Shown piece after piece: positions 3,798 through 28,680 of a DNA stretch of 64,000 nucleotides (position 1 is its first letter; each line of letters opens with the position of its first letter). A model generated the notes under the pieces. That model was not told the DNA's origin, ran no database searches, and was given only the letters and a program-made list of their open reading frames with translations. The translations under genes and the position numbers were made by a program. Location: IMG/VR virus record IMGVR_UViG_3300009370_001221, positions 1-64,000 of that record. One strand, 5' to 3'.

Positions 3798-4070
3798 TTA
3801 TTTGTATTTCTCGTCGTTCCAGTTATCTAACTCTTTCCAGCCTTCCCAATTTGGGATAGATCTACGGATATTATTAGTATTACGTACAATTAATTTTGCT
3901 AATCCAAATCCAGCATATACAAATGGAAAAAATGCGTGAACAAATGACATTATTGACAAATAACCCAATAAAGCACCTGCTCTACATGCTATCCATGCGT
4001 GATAGCAGTAATAAGAAAAATTACATTTACGATTCGCCGCGATCGCGGCATTTTTTAAGTGTCCAGCCAT
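3798..4070 (-). CDS. Small membrane protein (DUF6356-like)
   Basis: SY..H...A...VHAFFPF pattern. Confidence 0.5.
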   Translation of the reverse strand: MAGHLKNAAIAANRKCNFSYYCYHAWIACRAGALLGYLSIMSFVHAFFPFVYAGFGLAKLIVRNTNNIRRSIPNWEGWKELDNWNDEKYK

Positions 4071-5802: not shown

Positions 5803-6433
5803 TAATAAAGTTGTAAATATCTTTCCAATTTTTAGCAACTAAAGCAGGGCCTGGATAATCCATATTATGACCATGTTCCATTAGTATACCACGCAACCCC
5901 ATTTTTTCGCCAGTATCTACATTTTTCATTTTATCTTCTATCCACCAGCATCCTGAGTCCCTATAAGGTTCTAATGCGTCATCTTTATCAACGCCAGTAT
6001 CTAAACAAACTACTTTTTCAAATGCGGTTTCACCAAACAATTTGGCTAAATTCTGTTCTCTTAAACGTATCGCGTGTCTATTCAAACTTAATGATGTAAT
6101 TGCGTGAAATGCGTAACCATGTTGCTCATGTAATTTTTTTACATAAAACATAGCATCTCGTAATGGGGGGAGGAAACCTATTGAAGCACTCTCATTAAAA
6201 AACTCTGTTAATTTTTTAGCATTTGTACCAGTTATACCAAAACGCTTTGCTACGCTATAAACTAGTTTATGCCCATCTTCTGCTGTGTGTCCGTGCTCTT
6301 CCATCCACGTATGAAACGCGAATTCCCAGTCTAGCAAGACACCATCAACATCGGTTAATATGATTCTATCTTTCTTCATTGTTGAGTGACTTGTGAGTAG
6401 TGTTGCCAAAGAATTTACTTCTAAGGTAACCAT
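5786..6433 (-). CDS. HAD-superfamily hydrolase (5'-nucleotidase-like, T4 30.2-like)
   Basis: DVDGVLLD motif I and WIEDK motif; may start at MKKDRI (6379). Confidence 0.8.
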   Translation of the reverse strand: MVTLEVNSLATLLTSHSTMKKDRIILTDVDGVLLDWEFAFHTWMEEHGHTAEDGHKLVYSVAKRFGITGTNAKKLTEFFNESASIGFLPPLRDAMFYVKKLHEQHGYAFHAITSLSLNRHAIRLREQNLAKLFGETAFEKVVCLDTGVDKDDALEPYRDSGCWWIEDKMKNVDTGEKMGLRGILMEHGHNMDYPGPALVAKNWKDIYNFITNPSS

Positions 6434-17323: not shown

Positions 17324-17905
17324 TTGCTACCTAAATTGAATAACTTTTTCATTGACCCTGATATTTGCTTTGACGTGAGCAAATTACAGGATGCATTGCG
17401 CGAAGTTGATTCGCGAGTCGCAAGACAATCTCCTTTAGGCAAAAGAGACATCAATGCTATTTGTCTGACACAAATTCCCGGTGATCCAAACTCTATCACA
17501 GGTGGTAATGTAAGAGGATTATTTTGGACACGCCCAACAAGCAGTGGTGAAGAGGTCCAACGAGAAAATCCAATAGACGAATCCCAATATACTGAGTTTG
17601 TTAAACTATTTGAAGATACTTACTTCAAAGAAGTATACGATACACTTATTCCCAATTATAAATTAGGCAGAGTAAGATTGCTTTGGAAAATGCCACGCAC
17701 AACATTGAGTTGGCACAGGGATCCTGAACGCAGATTACACATACCTATCGTAACCAACCCAGGCGCACTAATGATTATTGATGATGAAGTAAAACATATG
17801 CCCGCAGATGGCAAAGTATGGATTACTGATAATACAAAATATCATAATGCGTTTAACGGAGGCGAGGAAGATCGCGTCCATTTAGTTGCTACAGTTATAG
17901 AATAA
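17324..17905 (+). CDS. Asp/Asn beta-hydroxylase-like oxygenase
   Basis: WHRD, RLHIPIVTN and HNAFNGGEEDRVHLV. Confidence 0.8.
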   Translation: MLPKLNNFFIDPDICFDVSKLQDALREVDSRVARQSPLGKRDINAICLTQIPGDPNSITGGNVRGLFWTRPTSSGEEVQRENPIDESQYTEFVKLFEDTYFKEVYDTLIPNYKLGRVRLLWKMPRTTLSWHRDPERRLHIPIVTNPGALMIIDDEVKHMPADGKVWITDNTKYHNAFNGGEEDRVHLVATVIE

Positions 17906-17936
17906 GGAAAGGCCCTAAACGGGCCCTTCCAAAAAA
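17906..17936. terminator. GC hairpin between the convergent oxygenase and tmRNA units
   Basis: GGAAAGGCCC-TAAAC-GGGCCCTTCC followed by A6. Confidence 0.55.
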
Positions 17937-18114
17937 GCAGATTGGGTAACAAGGTATGCTCTATACCCCGGAATACTGCCGTGATTAAGCGGCTAATGCG
18001 TATTCGTAATAATCGTCGTTTGCAATTATTTTAGTTTGCTGTTTTTTAACATGGAACTGCTCCCATGTGTCGTCCGTATATCGTCCTCACCCTGTCGAAG
18101 CCATGTCACCCCCG

Positions 18115-18258
18115 TCAAAAAAAGATTAAGTATACTATACCACCAATAATAATTATGTCGGCACAGATACTCCATGCGACATATATTTTAAACATATATT
18201 CTATAGCTTTCCTGAAAGGCCTTGGTAATGTTTTTATCTTGTTCCGGAGGAATCGCAT
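18115..18258 (-). CDS. 47-aa basic/transmembrane peptide inside the tmRNA intervening segment
   Basis: AGGAGG-8nt-ATG; MRFLRNKIKTLPRPFRKAIEYMFKIYVAWSICADIIIIGGIVYLIFF*; stop codon ends 1 nt before tmRNA G1. Confidence 0.65.
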   Translation of the reverse strand: MRFLRNKIKTLPRPFRKAIEYMFKIYVAWSICADIIIIGGIVYLIFF

Positions 18259-18292
18259 CGTCGCTTCCTCCTATCAATGTATTATAGTTCAT
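18188..18292 (-). CDS. Possible 34-aa ORF in the tmRNA intervening segment
   Basis: AAGGAGA RBS right after CCA; MNYNTLIGGSDDAIPPEQDKNITKAFQESYRIYV*; overlaps the 47-aa ORF out of frame. Confidence 0.35.
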   Translation of the reverse strand: MNYNTLIGGSDDAIPPEQDKNITKAFQESYRIYV

Positions 18293-18372
18293 TTTAATCT
18301 CCTTTTGGTGGAGGTGGTGGGGATCGAACCCACGTCCAGAATGCATATTGTCTACATCATACGACAATAAAG

Positions 18373-18546
18373 TTACTTACTTATTTTCTTTTCTTCATAT
18401 AAAACATGTTTGCGTACAACTGGGTCATACTTTTTTAATTTAAGTTTATTGCCACCCATCTTTCTTTTATTAACGGTTGTGGTATAATAATGCCCGGTAC
18501 CAGCAGTTGATACTAATTTAATAATTGTAATATTTTTACTTGCCAT
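18373..18546 (-). CDS. rpmG: 50S ribosomal protein bL33 (zinc-independent form)
   Basis: Hand translation: [57 protein letters not shown], with IKLVSxAGTGHxYTT and [10 protein letters not shown] signatures; TAATG overlap with the upstream gene; absent from ORF track (57 aa). Confidence 0.95.
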
Positions 18547-23341: not shown

Positions 23342-23733
23342 TATTCCTCCAATTGTTTTATAGGCTCTATAATACTTTCTATTCTATTTGTGTTAAATAA
23401 TCCTACTAGTTTAGCAGTTTTATCATCACACTTATAATAACAATTACTCTTACTTAATAACCAACCAAAGCATATTGCATCTCTCTCTACTTTTGCCCAT
23501 TTAAGATTAAATATTATTATACTACATCTTAGAGCTGTGTCAAGCATCCATTCTGTATCTCTCTCGGGAGTCATATCATTTATTGCTAAACAGCACTCTG
23601 CATCTATATTATCAAGTACTAATATTAATTCACTTTGTTCGTCTTTACTAAAACCTGATATTAATATGTTTACATCAGCACCATAATATCTATCTGGTGG
23701 TGTTATTATTGTTAATTTATCCGCCGAGGACAT
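23341..23733 (-). CDS. Hypothetical protein
   Basis: IITPPD N-terminal motif; coupled to neighbours. Confidence 0.6.
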   Translation of the reverse strand: MSSADKLTIITPPDRYYGADVNILISGFSKDEQSELILVLDNIDAECCLAINDMTPERDTEWMLDTALRCSIIIFNLKWAKVERDAICFGWLLSKSNCYYKCDDKTAKLVGLFNTNRIESIIEPIKQLEE

Positions 23734-25723
23734 CTTGTCTGCTTAAATAATTTTGTAAGAACTCTTGTTCCTCATCTGTAAACTCTTCTATGTTTACACC
23801 ACTATTTAAGCGAGTAAGTAAATTATCTACCTGTTCCTGATTAAAATTAGCAGTATTTTCAGCACCAGTTAGTTTAGTTTTTAATTGTGCTATTTCTTTT
23901 TCTAACTTTTTAACTTTTTTCTTATCCTCTTTTAATACTACTATGGGAGTGCCTTCTAATTGCTCTGTTTCTACTACAGTTTTTTCTACTATTTTTTCAA
24001 CTTCTACCGGAACTTCCTTAATTACTTCTACTTCCTTAATTACTTCTACAGGAACTTCCTTCTCTACTATTTTCTCAACTTCTACAATTTTTTCTACAAT
24101 CTTTTCAACAGGAACTTCTACCTCTTTAATAACTTCTTTAATAACTTCTACTGGCACTTCTTTTTCTACAATTTTTTCAACAATTTTCTCTACTTCTACT
24201 TCTTTAATTACTTCTACTGGAACTTCCTTCTCTACTATTTTCTCAACAATAACTTCTTTCTCAACAGGAACTTTTACTTCTTTAATGATTTCTTTAATTA
24301 CTTCTACAGGAACTTCTTTTTCAACAACTACTTCCTTTTCAACAACAACTTCCTCTATTCTCACTGTTTCTTCCTGGTTAGAATCCTGCTTCGGCCCAGC
24401 GTGGATCGGTCTTTTTTTTTCGGAAGGATCTCTAAAACGTTTTAATGTCATATTACCAGCAACAACTAATAATACTGCAAGTGGATCAAATACAAATATA
24501 ATTGTAATAATTACCCAACGTACTGCTTCTTCTAATAAATCACGTGTAACATTAGATCCGTATACTAAACCAGCAATGTATTTAATAGGCCCTACTTCTA
24601 CTTCTAACTGGCGTACTTCTGTAGCAAGTACAAAACGTTGCTCTTTAAGTGTATCTATCTGTGTATAGTAATCTTCTATTACTACTTCTAATTCATTTAC
24701 TTTTGTTTCTACTTCATCTGCTTTCATACCCATTTGTTCTTGAAGTTGTTTAATTTCAGCATTAGCTTCATCAATTTCTGATTGGGTATTTTCACGCAAT
24801 TGTGCTATTTTATTTTGATGTGGTCGAATAGCAACTGCTAATGCTTCGCGCAATGCAGTAATTTCTGTTTGCACTTCATTTGAGATGGCAAGTTCATCCT
24901 GCCTTATACCATCTATCTCTTGCTCAATCTCTCTAATTTTAAATGCCAAGGCCTCTCGCTCGGGTTTTTGTTTTTCACGCAATTCTTTACCACGCTTAAT
25001 CCAATCAATCGGTTGTCCCCATGTCCGCTTCTCTACGCCTTTATCTACATATGCTTGAACTTCTTTATCTAATTGTGCTAATTGTTGATTTATACGGTCT
25101 ATTGCTTGTTGTTTAACAGCAACATCATCACGCACACGATCTATAGCATTAGACACTCGTTGTTCTTGTATAGCAATATCTTTTTCTAATTGCGCTCTTA
25201 ATGCTGTTATTTGTTGATTCTCTTGGCTAATACTACTGCTGACTCTACCCCAAGCACCATCACGTATTTCTTCTTGTTGTTCAATAGCTGAGGCAATATT
25301 TGTATTATGCTGACCGTGATCTTTACTTTGCAACCGCTCTATTTTCTCTTTAGTAACATTTACTCGCCCAGTAAATCGATTAATCTTTTCATTAATACGC
25401 TCTACTTTTGCTTCTGCTTGTGTTGTATTACTTGTTTGCTCTACGTGTGCTTTGGATAAAAAGCCAAAGATACCCATAGACGTAATGAACATTAAGACAA
25501 CAACTGCTATAGTAAGATAATACTTTAGAAATTTTGGTATGCGAGCCCAAAACTGGTAGAGCCACGAGGCAGTTACTAACTTACCTATCTCTAATACTAC
25601 ACCCATAATTGCTATAGGCACAGCGGCCGCGGCAAATATTGCCATTAAGCCAATAATACTATAATATGCGGCAACGGCGCTGATCGACAGCGCCGTCAAC
25701 AGAACAAATATTCCAAACTTCAT
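23717..25723 (-). CDS. Membrane-anchored long coiled-coil protein with C-terminal V/E/K/I/P repeats
   Basis: N-terminal TM helices, long heptad region, GPIKYIA...VFDPLAV TM, repeated EKIVEKEVPVEVIKE. Confidence 0.75.
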   Translation of the reverse strand: MKFGIFVLLTALSISAVAAYYSIIGLMAIFAAAAVPIAIMGVVLEIGKLVTASWLYQFWARIPKFLKYYLTIAVVVLMFITSMGIFGFLSKAHVEQTSNTTQAEAKVERINEKINRFTGRVNVTKEKIERLQSKDHGQHNTNIASAIEQQEEIRDGAWGRVSSSISQENQQITALRAQLEKDIAIQEQRVSNAIDRVRDDVAVKQQAIDRINQQLAQLDKEVQAYVDKGVEKRTWGQPIDWIKRGKELREKQKPEREALAFKIREIEQEIDGIRQDELAISNEVQTEITALREALAVAIRPHQNKIAQLRENTQSEIDEANAEIKQLQEQMGMKADEVETKVNELEVVIEDYYTQIDTLKEQRFVLATEVRQLEVEVGPIKYIAGLVYGSNVTRDLLEEAVRWVIITIIFVFDPLAVLLVVAGNMTLKRFRDPSEKKRPIHAGPKQDSNQEETVRIEEVVVEKEVVVEKEVPVEVIKEIIKEVKVPVEKEVIVEKIVEKEVPVEVIKEVEVEKIVEKIVEKEVPVEVIKEVIKEVEVPVEKIVEKIVEVEKIVEKEVPVEVIKEVEVIKEVPVEVEKIVEKTVVETEQLEGTPIVVLKEDKKKVKKLEKEIAQLKTKLTGAENTANFNQEQVDNLLTRLNSGVNIEEFTDEEQEFLQNYLSRQDVLGG
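23965..24360 (-). repeat. Coding tandem repeats (EKIVEKEVPVEVIKEV-like)
   Basis: Multiple imperfect copies visible in DNA and protein. Confidence 0.85.
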
Positions 25724-25758: not shown

Positions 25759-25845
25759 TGGCTCCGGGGGTTGGGATCGAACCAACATTGCCCATTGGGC
25801 ACCCTATAAACGGTAGGGCCTGTATACCTATTCCAGCACCCCGGA
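25759..25845 (-). tRNA. Atypical tRNA, anticodon GUU (Asn), long variable arm, encoded CCA
   Basis: TCCGGGG/CCCCGGA acceptor, G73, CCA; D arm CTG-GAATAGGTATA-CAG; anticodon arm CCCTA-CCGTTTA-TAGGG; variable arm TGCCC-AAT-GGGCA; T arm GTTGG-TTCGATC-CCAAC; 87 nt. Confidence 0.9.
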
Positions 25846-25852
25846 TCATTTT

Positions 25853-26710
25853 TTATCGGTGCATATTTGCTACTATACCACGCAACTTATATTGTTCCAT
25901 CGCATGAATAAAACGTGTCATGCCTATTCCACCACCTACTCTTGGAATAAAATCTAATTGTAAAAAGTCATCTAGTTCTTTTGTTACACGATCTTTACCA
26001 AATGTTCCAAACAATAAATCTGCATACATACCATCACTAATTGTATGAAACATTTCTCGCATTTCAGTAGTGTCACTACTGCGCTCTGCTGAACCAATAG
26101 TTTCCATGCCCGCTATAATTACATCAATTTTTGCGGCCGTTCCGTCACCATTTTGTTTCATGTTCCAAAAAGGACTTGTGTAATTAGGGAAGTTTTTAAT
26201 CATGCAAACTCTACCTTGCCAATTCTTACACATTGCGTCTTCGTGCTCATGCTCGAGTTCTTGAACACCAAAATCCTCGCACCATGCAAGATAATCCTTT
26301 GCAACAACTCCACCCTTAGAACACCAACCTAAGTATTCCATAAGTTCTTTTTCCATTTTTTCTAAATCATTCATGTCACCTGGCATTTCAAATTCAAACA
26401 TTGGGAAAATTAAATCATGTCTACCTTCTACAACATTAGGTTCTTGCCTATAGGATGTTGAAACACAAAAAAACCCCGGGACATGGGGTTTAGTTAAAAG
26501 CTCGTACTCGAGCCACATTTGGCCAGTTTGTGGAAGTGGCCAAACTTCTCCGGCATAGTTATATGTTGCTACAGTTGTTGGATCTTCACACGCGGCTAAT
26601 ATTGATAATCTATTTTGAGTATGTACCTCTTCAAATCCTTTAGCCATAAAAAAAGACCTTAATAGGCCTGTGGCTTCAGTAAACTGTTGAGGGTTAATTA
26701 ATTGCGTCAT
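25853..26710 (-). CDS. Class IIb aminoacyl-tRNA synthetase catalytic-core protein (AsnRS/AspRS-like, no anticodon-binding domain)
   Basis: Motif 1-like LRSFFMAKGFEEVHT, LPQTGQMWLE, motif 2 SYRQEP...RHDLIFPMFEFE, ETIGSAER, motif 3 GGGIGMTR; 285 aa from the GGAG-preceded ATG at 26710. Confidence 0.85.
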   Translation of the reverse strand: MTQLINPQQFTEATGLLRSFFMAKGFEEVHTQNRLSILAACEDPTTVATYNYAGEVWPLPQTGQMWLEYELLTKPHVPGFFCVSTSYRQEPNVVEGRHDLIFPMFEFEMPGDMNDLEKMEKELMEYLGWCSKGGVVAKDYLAWCEDFGVQELEHEHEDAMCKNWQGRVCMIKNFPNYTSPFWNMKQNGDGTAAKIDVIIAGMETIGSAERSSDTTEMREMFHTISDGMYADLLFGTFGKDRVTKELDDFLQLDFIPRVGGGIGMTRFIHAMEQYKLRGIVANMHR

Positions 26711-26839
26711 TCTTATTCTCCAGTCAAATTTTTTTAGGCGCAAGACAAGCCGCCTAAACTGTTTTTATTTATACCTTTTCTTTATTATAGTACAATTAAG
26801 TCAAGTTATTATTATATCAGAAACCACTTTAAATATTAT

Positions 26840-27205: not shown

Positions 27206-27760
27206 TTAATCTTCGTCTTGAAACTCTGCAGGATTTTCTTTATCATAATCCCACTTCATTTTATCTTTATCTAATTTTTTTATTGCTCGTTTTTTATATG
27301 CATCAAGTACACCAAGTTCTTTAGCACGAACAATAATTGCTTTTGCTATTTCTACTTCTTGTCTTGATGGTGGATTTGTTTTTGACCTGCCATTAAATGA
27401 CATTAATACATTTGCTATGTCATCATCCAATTGGCCAGGCACATCACGTAGCATATGTAATGCTATTGCCATATCACCTGCTTCGGCAGCTATTAAATTT
27501 GTACTTGTACCAACACCAAACTCGGCTGTTTTAATTCTTGACAACATATCATCATGACTAGATTGTCGAGCCGCTTGTTGTTTTTCTGCCTGGTAATCAG
27601 CAAAATCAGGAAAAGCCGTTACTAAACGATCAAGTTCTTTTTGTAATTTAGCAGGCGCCTTGCCAGTTTTTTCTTTAGCAATCTCTATTTCTTGATTGAG
27701 TTTTTCAATCTTTTTAGCAAGGCGATCTTTATTCTCAAGTATTACTTCATTAATTTTCAT
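27206..27760 (-). CDS. Hypothetical protein, possible internal head protein
   Basis: MKINEVILE N-terminal motif. Confidence 0.55.
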   Translation of the reverse strand: MKINEVILENKDRLAKKIEKLNQEIEIAKEKTGKAPAKLQKELDRLVTAFPDFADYQAEKQQAARQSSHDDMLSRIKTAEFGVGTSTNLIAAEAGDMAIALHMLRDVPGQLDDDIANVLMSFNGRSKTNPPSRQEVEIAKAIIVRAKELGVLDAYKKRAIKKLDKDKMKWDYDKENPAEFQDED

Positions 27761-28680
27761 TACTTATTAACGTTATCTTGATCAAATGCTTTAGGTTGTG
27801 TTGCATTTTTCTTCATCCACTTCAGTAAATTCGGCTTTGCTGTTTTAGTATTGCCTTTATTATACCATTCTGGACTATCATCACCTCTTTTTGGTGTGCC
27901 GCGGCCGATCAAGTTCCGGCCGCCGCCGATATCGCCACCGATAGGTTTTTCCATCTGTTGTCGGATCTTATCTAGCCAGTTCTGATCCATCGTCCCAGAG
28001 CCAATGCGTGTCGGCCGTTGTAAAATTCCTGGAGGAGGAGTGTTAGGCATTGCTTGTTTTCTATCCAACCCAGCATTCTTCATCATACTGTCCAATTGAT
28101 TTTGAAGTCCTGGACGAACGCCTTGTGCTGGTTTTGGTGTTGCATAACCTGGTGGAGGTGTGTTTGGACCACTTGCCACTTGTGTACCTGGTGGAGGAGT
28201 ATTTGGTAACTCCGCTACCTTTGTTCCTGGTGGAGGAGTATTTGGTAAATTACTTGGTTTTGGTGTTGCATAATTTCTACCTGGAGGGCCACTTGCTCCT
28301 GTACCTGCGGCTACTTGTTTAGGGGCATATCGTCCTGCTGGGCCATCTGCACCCGTGCCTGCGGCTACCTGTCTTGGTGCATAATTCCTTCCTGGAGGGC
28401 CACTTGCTCCTGTGCCTGCGGCTACCTGTCTTGGTGCATAATTCCTTCCTGGAGGGCCACTTGCTCCTGTGCCAGCGGCTGGTACCCTTGTCGGTGTCAT
28501 AATGCCAGCGGCGCCCATATTGCCGCCGCTTGGTCCTTCAGCGTCATGCTTAGGATCAAATTCACCACCACTTTGAAGATCTGGATCACCACCACCCAAT
28601 GCGGCTTTCTCGGCGCGCAATGCGGCAATTTGCTTATCAATTTCTTCAGCTCTACCTTCTAAAATTTGCTTAATTTTCAT
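27760..28680 (-). CDS. Gly/Pro-rich repeat protein, possible internal head protein
   Basis: MKIKQILEG N-terminus; four AAGTGASGPPGRNYAPRQV-like units and four PNTPPPG units. Confidence 0.65.
   Translation of the reverse strand: MKIKQILEGRAEEIDKQIAALRAEKAALGGGDPDLQSGGEFDPKHDAEGPSGGNMGAAGIMTPTRVPAAGTGASGPPGRNYAPRQVAAGTGASGPPGRNYAPRQVAAGTGADGPAGRYAPKQVAAGTGASGPPGRNYATPKPSNLPNTPPPGTKVAELPNTPPPGTQVASGPNTPPPGYATPKPAQGVRPGLQNQLDSMMKNAGLDRKQAMPNTPPPGILQRPTRIGSGTMDQNWLDKIRQQMEKPIGGDIGGGRNLIGRGTPKRGDDSPEWYNKGNTKTAKPNLLKWMKKNATQPKAFDQDNVNK
28260..28480 (-). repeat. About four coding tandem repeats (unit about 57 bp)
   Basis: CCTGGAGGGCCACTTGCTCCTGT..GCGGCTAC..G core repeated. Confidence 0.85.

Follow-up and report, generated by a model that had tools for sequence, protein, structure and literature searches.

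Why does a marine phage carry a stripped-down enzyme resembling asparaginyl-tRNA synthetase (AsnRS), and why is this enzyme followed at once by a chimeric tRNA with the anticodon GUU? The locus lies in a window of 64,000 nucleotides, the whole stretch of DNA that was analysed (positions 1 to 64,000 of IMG/VR record IMGVR_UViG_3300009370_001221). A first-pass annotation, made from the sequence alone, described a synthetase core without an anticodon-binding domain (hereafter X) next to a hybrid tRNA, and proposed that X may charge, or amidate Asp on, this private tRNA using the acceptor stem and the variable arm, giving the phage a host-independent Asn supply or a non-ribosomal aminoacyl donor. 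We show herein that what it described at this locus is real, and that the pair is widespread in marine phages. Its interpretation, however, is only partly supported: the pairing itself holds up within one phage clade, whereas an asparagine supply for translation is not favored, as the bacterial relatives of X lack the tRNA and many of them sit among pyrimidine-synthesis genes.

A synthetase core and a chimeric tRNA

The features of the locus are collected in the table. The conserved N-terminus of the family, MTQLI(N/D)P, fixes the start of X. Pfam tRNA-synt_2 covers residues 11-271 (E 3.4e-14), and neither an N-terminal OB domain nor any other domain was detected in the protein. The absence of an OB domain extends to the whole family, in which nearly all of the best 150 representatives listed are 265-300 aa. 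Nor did a separate gene for an anticodon-binding domain come to light, since the neighbors of X in the window gave no PHROG hit and a Pfam search of the neighbors in loci of candidate-phyla-radiation (CPR) bacteria showed no OB-fold domain. X itself matches PHROG 29758, "unknown function".

Features of the X-tRNA locus (positions in the window; the hairpin is given without a strand)
Feature	Position	Strand	Description
Gene X	25853-26710	-	285-aa class IIb synthetase-like catalytic core without an anticodon-binding domain; starts at ATG (26710); coordinates include the stop codon
Stop codon of X	25853-25855	-	TAA
Spacer	25846-25852	-	7 nt (AAAATGA) between the stop codon and tRNA position 1
tRNA(GUU)	25759-25845	-	87 nt; called tRNA-Asn(GTT) by ARAGORN
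Ribosome-binding site	26718-26721	-	GGAG, 7 nt upstream of the ATG of X
Hairpin	26735-26762	.	AGGCG...CGCCT, flanked by T and A runs, in the intergenic region upstream of X

X is closest to AsnRS. While a single-sequence search of the PDB found nothing, family profiles matched AsnRS (6.9e-12), AspRS (3.4e-9), LysRS (1e-4) and archaeal Asn synthetase (0.007). The predicted structure (AF2, pLDDT 87.7) had AsnRS as its top Foldseek hits (E about 1e-14; TM 0.65-0.71 over the query), the reference enzymes being those of Brugia malayi (2XGT/2XTI), P. horikoshii (1X54) and T. thermophilus (9SH8). Identity is only 18-20%, however, and the curated asnS models were far from satisfied (TIGR00457, 28.8 bits against a cut-off of 342.6; NF003037, 28.8 against 414). 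X forms a compact separate family of about 270 clusters at 50% identity. All three class II motifs are present and invariant across 36 phage and cellular members, including R88, E90, R97, H98, E203, R210 and R266. QMWLE (residues 64-68) and ETIGSAER (203-210), likewise invariant, align with QLYLE and EIVGGSMR of Brugia AsnRS and carry the Q-x-x-L-E and E-x-x-G-x-x-x-R pocket signatures, although on this alignment alone the same residues could serve an Asn analogue.

Other class II cores were compared in turn. The archaeal asparagine synthetase AS-AR ("AsnRS2", PDB 3P8T) and bacterial AsnA are also stand-alone cores of about 290 aa without an anticodon domain that use adenylate chemistry on an Asp or Asn substrate without tRNA, and they provide a precedent for a tRNA-independent reaction of X. 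The sequence relation is much weaker than that to AsnRS, with 3P8T at only E 0.007, AsnA undetected at E up to 10, and the models for Asn-synthetase A scoring 13-24 bits against cut-offs of 322-389 (NF005055, 23.7 against 389; NF005053, 13 against 322). AS-AR and AsnA are not known to be paired with a tRNA or fused to PyrD or PyrF. EpmA/PoxA (GenX) is a class IIb core without an anticodon domain that transfers an activated amino acid to a non-tRNA acceptor, but it derives from LysRS; X scores 13.7 bits against the genX model (cut-off 286.9) and has no PDB-level sequence match to EpmA. HisZ, a HisRS paralogue without an anticodon domain partnered with the phosphoribosyltransferase HisG, is a synthetase core recruited into a nucleotide-type biosynthetic pathway next to a PRTase, and offers an analogy for the adjacency of X and PyrE. 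HisZ has degenerate catalytic residues and is regulatory; X keeps every catalytic motif invariant and is, on that basis, most likely an enzyme.

The tRNA is a hybrid of a tRNA-Asn-type acceptor end and anticodon on a tRNA-Leu-type body. It has U1-A72, G73, an encoded CCA, a 3-bp D stem with an 11-nt D loop, a 15-nt variable region with a 4-bp stem, and the anticodon loop CCGUUUA, which gives C33 and U37. In one phage contig (L057), positions 8-27 are identical between the special tRNA and the genuine tRNA-Leu(UAA), which is also the best-scoring non-member against the family covariance model (56.7 bits, compared with 91.7 bits for the window copy). The discriminator and anticodon are nonetheless not those of tRNA-Leu, as G73 (rather than A73) is present in every copy. 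Rfam's tRNA model (RF00005) does not reach its gathering score here, and the best clan hit is tRNA-Sec at 21 bits. Even so, the cloverleaf is supported by compensatory changes in 16 of 20 pairs across 30 homologues, in which U1-A72 is kept in 29 of 30 and G73 is invariant.

There is no room for a promoter between the two genes, so co-transcription is likely; the spacing in homologous loci is mostly about 8-35 nt, with a few wider gaps of up to about 160 nt. The hairpin upstream of X, which a simple terminator scan did not list, may insulate the X-tRNA unit from its neighbors, but this is inference only.

Distribution of the pair and its anticodon loop

Whether homologues of X neighbor such a tRNA had been set beforehand as a test of the pairing, and within the marine-phage clade it is passed: 71 of 79 related IMG/VR loci have the tRNA, as do the Prochlorococcus phages P-SSM2, P-SSM5 and P-SSM7, whereas 0 of 72 cellular loci have it (Fisher p about 2e-34, viral against cellular loci). 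The relation also holds in reverse, since a search for the tRNA alone found X directly upstream in 76 of 76 assessable contigs. On the X tree the tRNA-linked proteins form one clade with a few secondary losses, one of which left a 20-nt acceptor minihelix remnant. The module is common in ocean viromes, with more than 599 IMG/VR loci and more than 8000 protein clusters hit. A megablast of 12 kb around the locus against 50,697 phage records found nothing, so the phage itself is new at the DNA level.

The first-pass annotation knew of no described system with this pairing, but the pair is not unseen in databases. P-SSM2 (X being gp198), P-SSM5 and P-SSM7 have carried it since 2005-2010, annotated as "tRNA ligase" plus tRNA-Asn; elsewhere X is labelled "amino acid--tRNA ligase-related protein", "unknown function" or even "transposase". 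Literature searches found no description of the pair or of a pyrimidine-linked synthetase paralogue, and Sullivan et al. 2010 (PMC3037559) only lists "tRNA ligase" (T4-GC 194) in a table.

The anticodon loop is odd. GUU is kept in 58 of 59 distinct copies, but U33 is kept in only 42 of 59 and a purine at 37 in only 9 of 59, with U at 37 in 49 of 59. All 29 ordinary tRNAs in the same loci keep both U33 and the purine at 37 (Fisher p 9e-4 and 1e-15, respectively). The loop therefore does not appear to be under decoding constraints, which argues against a host-independent Asn supply for translation.

This bears on the view that X and its tRNA form an orthogonal translational pair, in which X would recognize only the acceptor end (G73, U1-A72), perhaps with the elbow or variable arm, and charge the tRNA with Asn for decoding of AAC and AAU. 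Such a route would help an AT-rich phage, for example, in hosts that make Asn-tRNA only by transamidation or when host tRNA-Asn is attacked. The class II motifs, the AsnRS-like site, the conserved acceptor elements and CCA, and the dependence of the tRNA on X are compatible with this view, and conservation of GUU is what decoding would require. The phage is 35% G+C with Asn at 5.4% of codons, mostly AAU, and the module often sits among phage tRNA and tmRNA genes. Moreover, phage tRNAs can alter their anticodon loops to escape host anticodon nucleases. On the contrary, U33 is lost in 29% of copies and the purine at 37 in 85%, and with GUU and G73 intact, host AsnRS or AspRS should already recognize the tRNA, which would make X unnecessary. 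We consider this explanation unlikely, though less so than the other alternatives below.

The long variable arm, which was proposed to serve in recognition, is dispensable. It is about 13-38 nt in 57 of 59 copies, but two members have a short variable region of about 5-6 nt, its length varies within X subclades, and the catalytic core has no extra domain to read it. A role as the identity handle was rejected on these grounds. Covariation of the motif-2 loop of X with tRNA pairs 2-71 and 3-70 was also rejected, since, by eye, identical loops go with different base pairs; only 1-72 and 73 can be identity elements. Neither does phage X appear adapted to bind RNA: no clade-specific substitutions were found at conserved positions, and phage X is very acidic (mean net charge -19), more so than cellular X.

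Cellular relatives and pyrimidine genes

X is older than the pairing and is not intrinsically tied to a private tRNA. Orthologues of 56-62% identity, with no group-specific change at conserved catalytic positions, occur in about 385 bacterial species genomes (CPR bacteria, Bacteroidota, Dependentiae and Proteobacteria) and lack the tRNA. Genomes that encode X include OZ246403.1 and Aureispira and Chitinophagales MAGs. The tRNA is also absent beside X in the huge phages LR756501 and LR756508 and in about 10% of marine-phage loci. The same function is expected for phage and cellular X. Bacteroidota are expected to carry an ordinary asnS, which weighs further against the translational pair.

Many cellular and unassigned members lie next to, or are fused with, PyrD, PyrE or PyrF, rather than translation genes. 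A PyrD-X fusion occurs on 7 contigs, next to a PyrE-PyrF fusion, and an X-PyrF fusion sits beside PyrE and PyrD. In Bacteroidota loci a PyrD-X operon occurs with divergent PyrE-PyrF; PyrD adjoins X in 7 of 9 and PyrE-PyrF in 8 of 9. PyrE-type PRTases lie next to X in Dependentiae, Alpha- and Gammaproteobacteria and two CPR genomes. PyrD scores 437 bits as class 1A dihydroorotate oxidase, and no PyrB, PyrC or CarAB appears in the three contexts read with up to 10-kb flanks. However, most CPR loci show Dus-X-DnaX rather than pyr genes, and no pyrD, pyrE or pyrF was found within reach in the window or the marine-phage loci, although P-SSM2 and P-SSM5 carry pyrE elsewhere in the genome.

These associations suggest a second alternative, in which X is a tRNA-independent metabolic gene (a dihydroorotate-forming ligase or an Asn-synthetase-type ligase) without a direct biochemical link to the tRNA. 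The tRNA-like gene might then be an RNase P/Z processing site that defines and stabilizes the 3' end of the X mRNA, or a decoy or backup for a host defense that targets tRNA-Asn. The occurrence of X without the tRNA, its strong pyrimidine gene association and its acidic, unchanged sequence relative to cellular forms favor this idea, and with 7-nt spacing RNase P cleavage would trim the mRNA right after the stop codon. A mere processing signal would not need the anticodon loop, yet C32, G34-U37 and A38 are well conserved, as are G73, U1-A72 and the encoded CCA. A decoy or backup would be useful without X, but among the 76 assessable contigs the tRNA was never found without it. In addition, two independent pointers to Asn, the enzyme pocket and the anticodon, sit side by side, which is unlikely to be coincidence. 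We regard this alternative as somewhat less likely than the translational pair.

A possible carrier tRNA for a proposed pyrimidine enzyme

The analysis establishes a conserved two-gene phage module, very likely on one transcript: an AsnRS-derived, predicted adenylate-forming protein without an anticodon domain, and a dedicated tRNA, found only next to it, that keeps the Asn identity set (G34-U35-U36, G73, U1-A72, CCA) while the two hallmarks of a decoding anticodon loop, U33 and a purine at 37, are not maintained. It also establishes that X predates the pairing and that its bacterial orthologues lack the tRNA and associate with PyrD, PyrE and PyrF. Everything that concerns catalysis, charging of the tRNA and the biological role is inferred.

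Our preferred but tentative reading is that X is an adenylating enzyme of the dihydroorotate-to-UMP pathway, whose phage versions recruited a non-decoding Asn-type carrier tRNA. X would bind an Asn-type substrate in an AsnRS-like pocket and use ATP to supply the ring precursor to PyrD; dihydroorotate equals Asn + CO2 - H2O, and it is also the cyclized form of N-carbamoyl-Asp. In phages, X would then be a nucleotide-supply gene. In the marine-phage clade the tRNA would be its RNA partner, a non-translational carrier of the Asn or Asp residue. Either host AsnRS or non-discriminating AspRS (with GatCAB) would load the tRNA through its anticodon, G73 and U1-A72 and hand the residue to X, or X itself would load it at the acceptor end. 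We favor the carrier-to-X direction, as it would explain why GUU is kept although X has no anticodon reader, and why X does not need the tRNA in cells that have free Asn. The alternative raised by the first-pass annotation, a non-ribosomal use of the charged tRNA, here taken to include a metabolic one, remains possible and fits better than its translational one.

Several points speak against this reading. The reaction (Asn + CO2, or carbamoyl-Asp cyclization) is inferred only from gene association, stoichiometry and pocket similarity, without biochemical data. An AsnRS-type pocket activates an alpha-carboxylate, while ring closure to dihydroorotate needs activation of the beta-carboxyl or of a carbamate. 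A long variable arm may hinder host class IIb enzymes, which approach from the variable-arm side, and this would hurt the version in which the host loads the tRNA. Phage X is very acidic and shows no adaptation for RNA binding, and the preference for U at position 37 is unexplained. In its boldest form, X would close the dihydroorotate ring from an asparagine residue plus CO2, using ATP, and so bypass carbamoyl-phosphate synthetase, aspartate transcarbamoylase and dihydroorotase; with asparagine delivered in marine phages on a dedicated, non-translating tRNA loaded by the host's own Asn-tRNA machinery, this would amount to tRNA-dependent pyrimidine biosynthesis. This would be a previously unrecognized entry into the pathway; it is possible but unlikely.

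A further alternative, the least likely of those considered, is that X aminoacylates the tRNA with Asn, Asp or a ring analogue such as dihydroorotate (a cyclic Asn analogue with a free alpha-carboxylate that, by inference, an AsnRS-like site could adenylate), and that the product is a non-ribosomal acyl donor for another phage or host enzyme of the Fem/MprF, L/F-transferase, cyclodipeptide-synthase or PEARL type. The non-decoding loop, the strictly kept acceptor end and CCA, and the dependence of the tRNA on X are in its favor. However, no conserved third gene accompanies the module, as neighbors differ between P-SSM2, P-SSM7, the window and the metagenomic loci; GUU conservation is left unexplained; and fusion of X to PyrD and PyrF points to a step in UMP synthesis rather than a branch away from it.

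Dedicated pairs and tRNA-dependent amino-acid transformations (PylRS-tRNAPyl, SepRS-tRNACys, ProRSx-tRNAProA of Streptomyces, ND-AspRS/GatCAB on tRNA-Asn, and Glu-tRNA in haem synthesis) likewise link an unusual tRNA genetically with a specialized enzyme. In some of them the tRNA acts as a scaffold or carrier for a metabolic conversion, and identity elements sit at U1-A72 and G73. In the X module, by contrast, the enzyme predates the tRNA and appears to work without it in cells, the tRNA has lost the U33 and R37 decoding features, the module is phage-borne, and the tRNA body is borrowed from tRNA-Leu. The module is a natural minimal case of a synthetase core that has lost anticodon reading coupled to a tRNA that has lost decoding features but kept its identity elements, which bears on how tRNA identity and new synthetase/tRNA pairs evolve and on the design of orthogonal pairs. 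Its presence in cultured cyanophages makes it amenable to testing in the Prochlorococcus NATL1A/NATL2A and P-SSM2 system. The unexpected tie to PyrD, PyrE and PyrF suggests an unrecognized enzyme of pyrimidine synthesis in CPR bacteria, Dependentiae, Bacteroidota and phages, and may link the translation machinery to nucleotide supply during infection. In two huge-phage loci (L004 and L005), however, no pyrimidine gene was seen near X, and only DNA polymerase B, a RimK-like ATP-grasp protein and an SNF2 helicase lie nearby.

The locus and its tRNA

A first-pass annotation of this locus had described a 285-aa class IIb synthetase core without an N-terminal OB anticodon-binding domain, which stops 7 nt before an 87-nt tRNA(GUU) with Asn-type features, a long variable arm and a Leu-like D arm, and this observation, including its coordinates, was confirmed. 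The protein, referred to here as X, starts at an ATG codon preceded 7 nt upstream by a GGAG, and the Pfam domain tRNA-synt_2, the class II D/K/N core, covers residues 11-271 (E 3.4e-14), with no other domain found. The curated asnS, aspS, lysS, genX and archaeal Asn-synthetase models are matched only locally, and far below their cut-offs. ARAGORN finds a single tRNA in the 64-kb window, tRNA-Asn(GTT), on the same strand as X and separated from it by 7 nt. This tRNA possesses U1-A72, G73 and an encoded CCA, a 3-bp D stem with an 11-nt loop, a 15-nt variable region with a 4-bp stem, and the anticodon loop CCGUUUA, such that positions 33 and 37 are C and U. The general tRNA model of Rfam does not reach its gathering score here, and the best clan hit is tRNA-Sec at 21 bits.

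Coordinates of the features discussed in the text
Sequence	Coordinates	Strand	Feature
Window	26710-25853	-	Gene for X, 285 aa
Window	25853-25855	-	TAA stop codon of X
Window	25759-25845	-	tRNA-Asn(GTT), 87 nt
Window	17903-18417	-	Permuted (two-piece) tmRNA gene
Window	23717-25723	-	Gene for a 668-aa protein immediately downstream of the tRNA
Window	27760-28680	-	Gene for a 306-aa Pro/Gly-rich protein
P-SSM2 (AY939844.2)	3813-3902		tRNA found by ARAGORN and the covariance model
P-SSM2 (AY939844.2)	5825-5910		Annotated position of tRNA-Asn feature PSSM2_199
Phage contig L086	3866-3885		20-nt tRNA remnant
Aureispira locus L293	5249-6205		Metallo-beta-lactamase-fold protein (Lactamase_B_2)

The window is a large phage that encodes ribonucleotide reductase, a DnaB helicase, virion proteins and a permuted tmRNA. 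It is identical over this locus to IMG/VR contigs of 158 and 235 kb, but has no close DNA relative among 50,697 phage records. At the protein level, tblastn finds X at about 61% identity in the Prochlorococcus phages P-SSM2, P-SSM5 and P-SSM7, where it is annotated as a "tRNA ligase" and is followed, 8-9 nt after the stop, by an 85-88-nt tRNA-Asn. In the GenBank record of P-SSM2, however, the tRNA-Asn feature is placed about 2 kb away, inside CDS PSSM2_205, while ARAGORN and the covariance model find the tRNA directly after PSSM2_198, where its locus-tag order says it belongs; the feature coordinates look stale. X is also present, at 42-49% identity, in two huge phages that have no such tRNA. 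The family is abundant, with at least 8000 hits in the protein search and at least 599 in the IMG/VR scan.

A covariance model built from 30 of the tRNAs finds the tRNA just downstream of X in 71 of the 79 IMG/VR loci that have downstream DNA. Conversely, a search of IMG/VR for the D-arm and anticodon pattern of the tRNA, made without reference to X, gave 80 contigs, and X lies directly upstream in all 76 that have upstream DNA. Therefore, the tRNA never appears without X, while X can occur without the tRNA. This exclusivity weighs against a model in which X is purely metabolic and the tRNA is merely a processing signal or a decoy, with no direct link between the two. That model is also hurt by conservation of the anticodon loop, and we consider it unlikely.

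Across 30 sequences, 16 of 20 cloverleaf pairs show compensatory changes, with U1-A72 being kept in 29 of 30 and G73 in all. Among 59 distinct copies, position 1 is always U, 54 copies end in A72-G73-CCA, and the anticodon is GUU in 58. In contrast, U33 is present in only 42 of the 59 (A in 9, C in 6 and G in 2), and position 37 is a purine in only 9 (U in 49), while the 29 ordinary tRNAs encoded in the same loci all have U33 and a purine at 37 (Fisher p of 9e-4 and 1e-15, respectively). The elements that are strictly kept, G34-U35-U36, G73 and U1-A72, are those read by AsnRS, non-discriminating AspRS and GatCAB. The interpretation offered in the first-pass annotation, that X and the tRNA constitute an orthogonal pair, was only partly supported. 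As a translational pair, it would explain the strict acceptor end and the dependence of the tRNA on X, but it is hurt by the non-decoding loop and by redundancy with host AsnRS or AspRS recognition, and appears rather unlikely.

The body of the tRNA is of the tRNA-Leu type. In phage contig L057, positions 8-27 of the special tRNA are identical to those of the phage's own tRNA-Leu(UAA), and that tRNA-Leu is also the best non-member hit to the covariance model. The variable arm ranges from a short region of about 5-6 nt (2 copies) through 13-19 nt to 27-38 nt, and thus cannot be a fixed identity handle. The longest class (L040, L045-L047, L053-L057, L066, L071, L076, L077 and L081-L084, where L numbers denote the loci compared) carries a conserved GCAAUAUAUUUA-like segment. 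ARAGORN miscalls several of these tRNAs as tRNA-Asp(atc), Ile(aat), Glu(ctc) or an undetermined type ("???") and misses others entirely, but the covariance model recovers them.

The X family and its cellular orthologues

An AF2 model of X built from a 36-sequence alignment is confident (pLDDT 87.7, pTM 0.86). Foldseek ranks AsnRS structures first (E about 1e-14, TM 0.65-0.71), with AspRS and LysRS just behind. Likewise, the family profile searched against PDB sequences gives AsnRS at 6.9e-12, AspRS at 3.4e-9, LysRS at 1e-4 and archaeal asparagine synthetase (3P8T) at 0.007, while AsnA and EpmA give nothing. Motif 2 (SYRQE...GRH...FPMFEFE), motif 3 (GGGIGMTR), and the segments QMWLE and ETIGSAER are invariant or nearly so, and the last two align with QLYLE and EIVGGSMR of Brugia AsnRS. 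An exhaustive profile search of 1.84 billion representatives finds only 1052 proteins at E up to 1e-3 and 269 at E up to 1e-30, and nearly all of the best 150 listed are 265-300 aa. Thus, X is a compact, separate family that lacks the anticodon domain throughout. Databases call it "tRNA ligase", "amino acid--tRNA ligase-related protein", "unknown function" (PHROG 29758) or, wrongly, "transposase". The last name, given by NCBI to several cellular orthologues (the protein clusters of loci L131, L100, L154 and L140), is evidently an annotation error that has been propagated.

An unexpected feature of the family is its association with pyrimidine genes in cells. A scan of 185,579 species genomes found 385 loci, which, apart from a few marine MAG contigs that fall inside the phage clade, come from CPR/Patescibacteria, Dependentiae, Rickettsiales and other Alphaproteobacteria, Gammaproteobacteria, Bdellovibrionales, and Bacteroidota (Aureispira and Chitinophagales). 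Identity to the window protein is 56-62%, the proteins are again 275-298 aa, and none of 72 such loci has the tRNA. Two longer family members are fusions: PyrD-X (661 aa), seen on 7 contigs next to a PyrE-PyrF fusion, and X-PyrF (588 aa), next to PyrE and PyrD. In Bacteroidota, PyrD adjoins X in 7 of 9 loci and PyrE-PyrF in 8 of 9, and PyrD there scores 437 bits as class 1A dihydroorotate oxidase. PyrD lies directly upstream of X in most of these loci, but in one Aureispira locus (L293) a metallo-beta-lactamase-fold gene intervenes, whose product could be another member of the same pathway. PyrE-type phosphoribosyltransferases also adjoin X in Dependentiae, an alphaproteobacterium, a gammaproteobacterium and two CPR genomes. 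No PyrB, PyrC or CarAB appears in the three contexts read with up to 10-kb flanks. The existence of these tRNA-less, pyr-linked orthologues is a further difficulty for a translational pair.

Thirteen CPR loci (L110, L104 and 11 others) instead show X downstream of a DusB-type tRNA dihydrouridine synthase, and most of those also have DnaX after it. Dus is an FMN TIM-barrel homologous to dihydroorotate dehydrogenase, and this arrangement mirrors the PyrD-X order in Bacteroidota, a resemblance that may or may not be meaningful.

On a tree of 153 X proteins, the pyr-linked and huge-phage forms are basal, and the CPR forms and the marine-phage forms are sister clades. The tRNA-linked proteins form one clade (66 of 76 rows) with a few losses. 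In one such case, contig L086, whose X is 86% identical to that of the window, only a 20-nt acceptor minihelix remnant (TCCGGGGT + CCCCCGGAGCCA) is kept, being the two acceptor strands with the whole tRNA interior deleted; this is either a secondary loss or an assembly artefact. Phage and cellular X do not differ at any conserved catalytic position, and phage X is simply more acidic.

Inferred role of X and its tRNA

The analysis shows that X and an obligate partner tRNA form a phage module, that the ancestry and cellular role of X are tied to the dihydroorotate-to-UMP genes, and that the tRNA keeps its Asn identity elements but not its decoding-loop features. What follows, including any catalytic activity of X and any charging of the tRNA, is inferred. 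At 56-62% identity and with an unchanged active site, phage X probably does what cellular X does, and fusion to PyrD on one side and PyrF on the other places that role in the UMP pathway, most simply upstream of PyrD. Dihydroorotate is formally Asn + CO2 - H2O, and is the cyclised isomer of N-carbamoyl-Asp. An ATP-using enzyme with an AsnRS-like pocket is a plausible ring-closing ligase. BioD and TsaC are precedents for CO2 plus ATP ureido or carbamoyl-adenylate chemistry, and AsnA and AS-AR are precedents for beta-carboxyl activation in this fold. Nonetheless, the chemistry proposed is inferred from association and stoichiometry, and an AsnRS-type site normally activates the alpha-carboxylate, which is not what dihydroorotate ring closure needs. 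In this view, the tRNA makes most sense as a carrier of the Asn or Asp residue for X: GUU, G73 and U1-A72 would let host enzymes load it, loss of U33 and of the purine at 37 fits a molecule not meant for the ribosome, and it would be useless without X. We favor this reading, but only tentatively. A role of the charged tRNA as a non-ribosomal acyl donor lacks a conserved third gene, and appears least likely.

No paper that analyses the pair or the pyrimidine link was found in literature searches, and Sullivan et al. 2010 only tabulate "tRNA ligase". The module is real, widespread and experimentally tractable in P-SSM2 and Prochlorococcus, although mechanistically unexplained.

Other features of the phage loci

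The permuted tmRNA gene of the window lies 7.5 kb from the module (Rfam tmRNA_permuted 119.7 bits, beta_tmRNA 99.6 bits), and by our reading of the alignment its tag reading frame ends in ...YALAA. tmRNA genes also lie within 1-2 kb of X in several related phage loci (L041, L047, L066 and L071). In several phage lineages (L038, L045, L058, L065 and L076; columns 301-324 of the X alignment A2), X itself ends in ...LAA, ...ALAA or ...EAA, resembling the C-terminal end of the ssrA/tmRNA degradation tag, which may represent a built-in ClpXP degron. The window copy ends in ...ANMHR instead.

Two nearby genes of the window encode repeat-rich proteins, neither of which has a PHROG match. The 668-aa product of the gene immediately downstream of the tRNA has an N-terminal membrane segment, long coiled-coil-like stretches and many tandem VEKEVPVEVIKE-type repeats, while the 306-aa protein is of low complexity and carries repeated GTGASGPPGRNYAPRQVAA and NTPPPG motifs.
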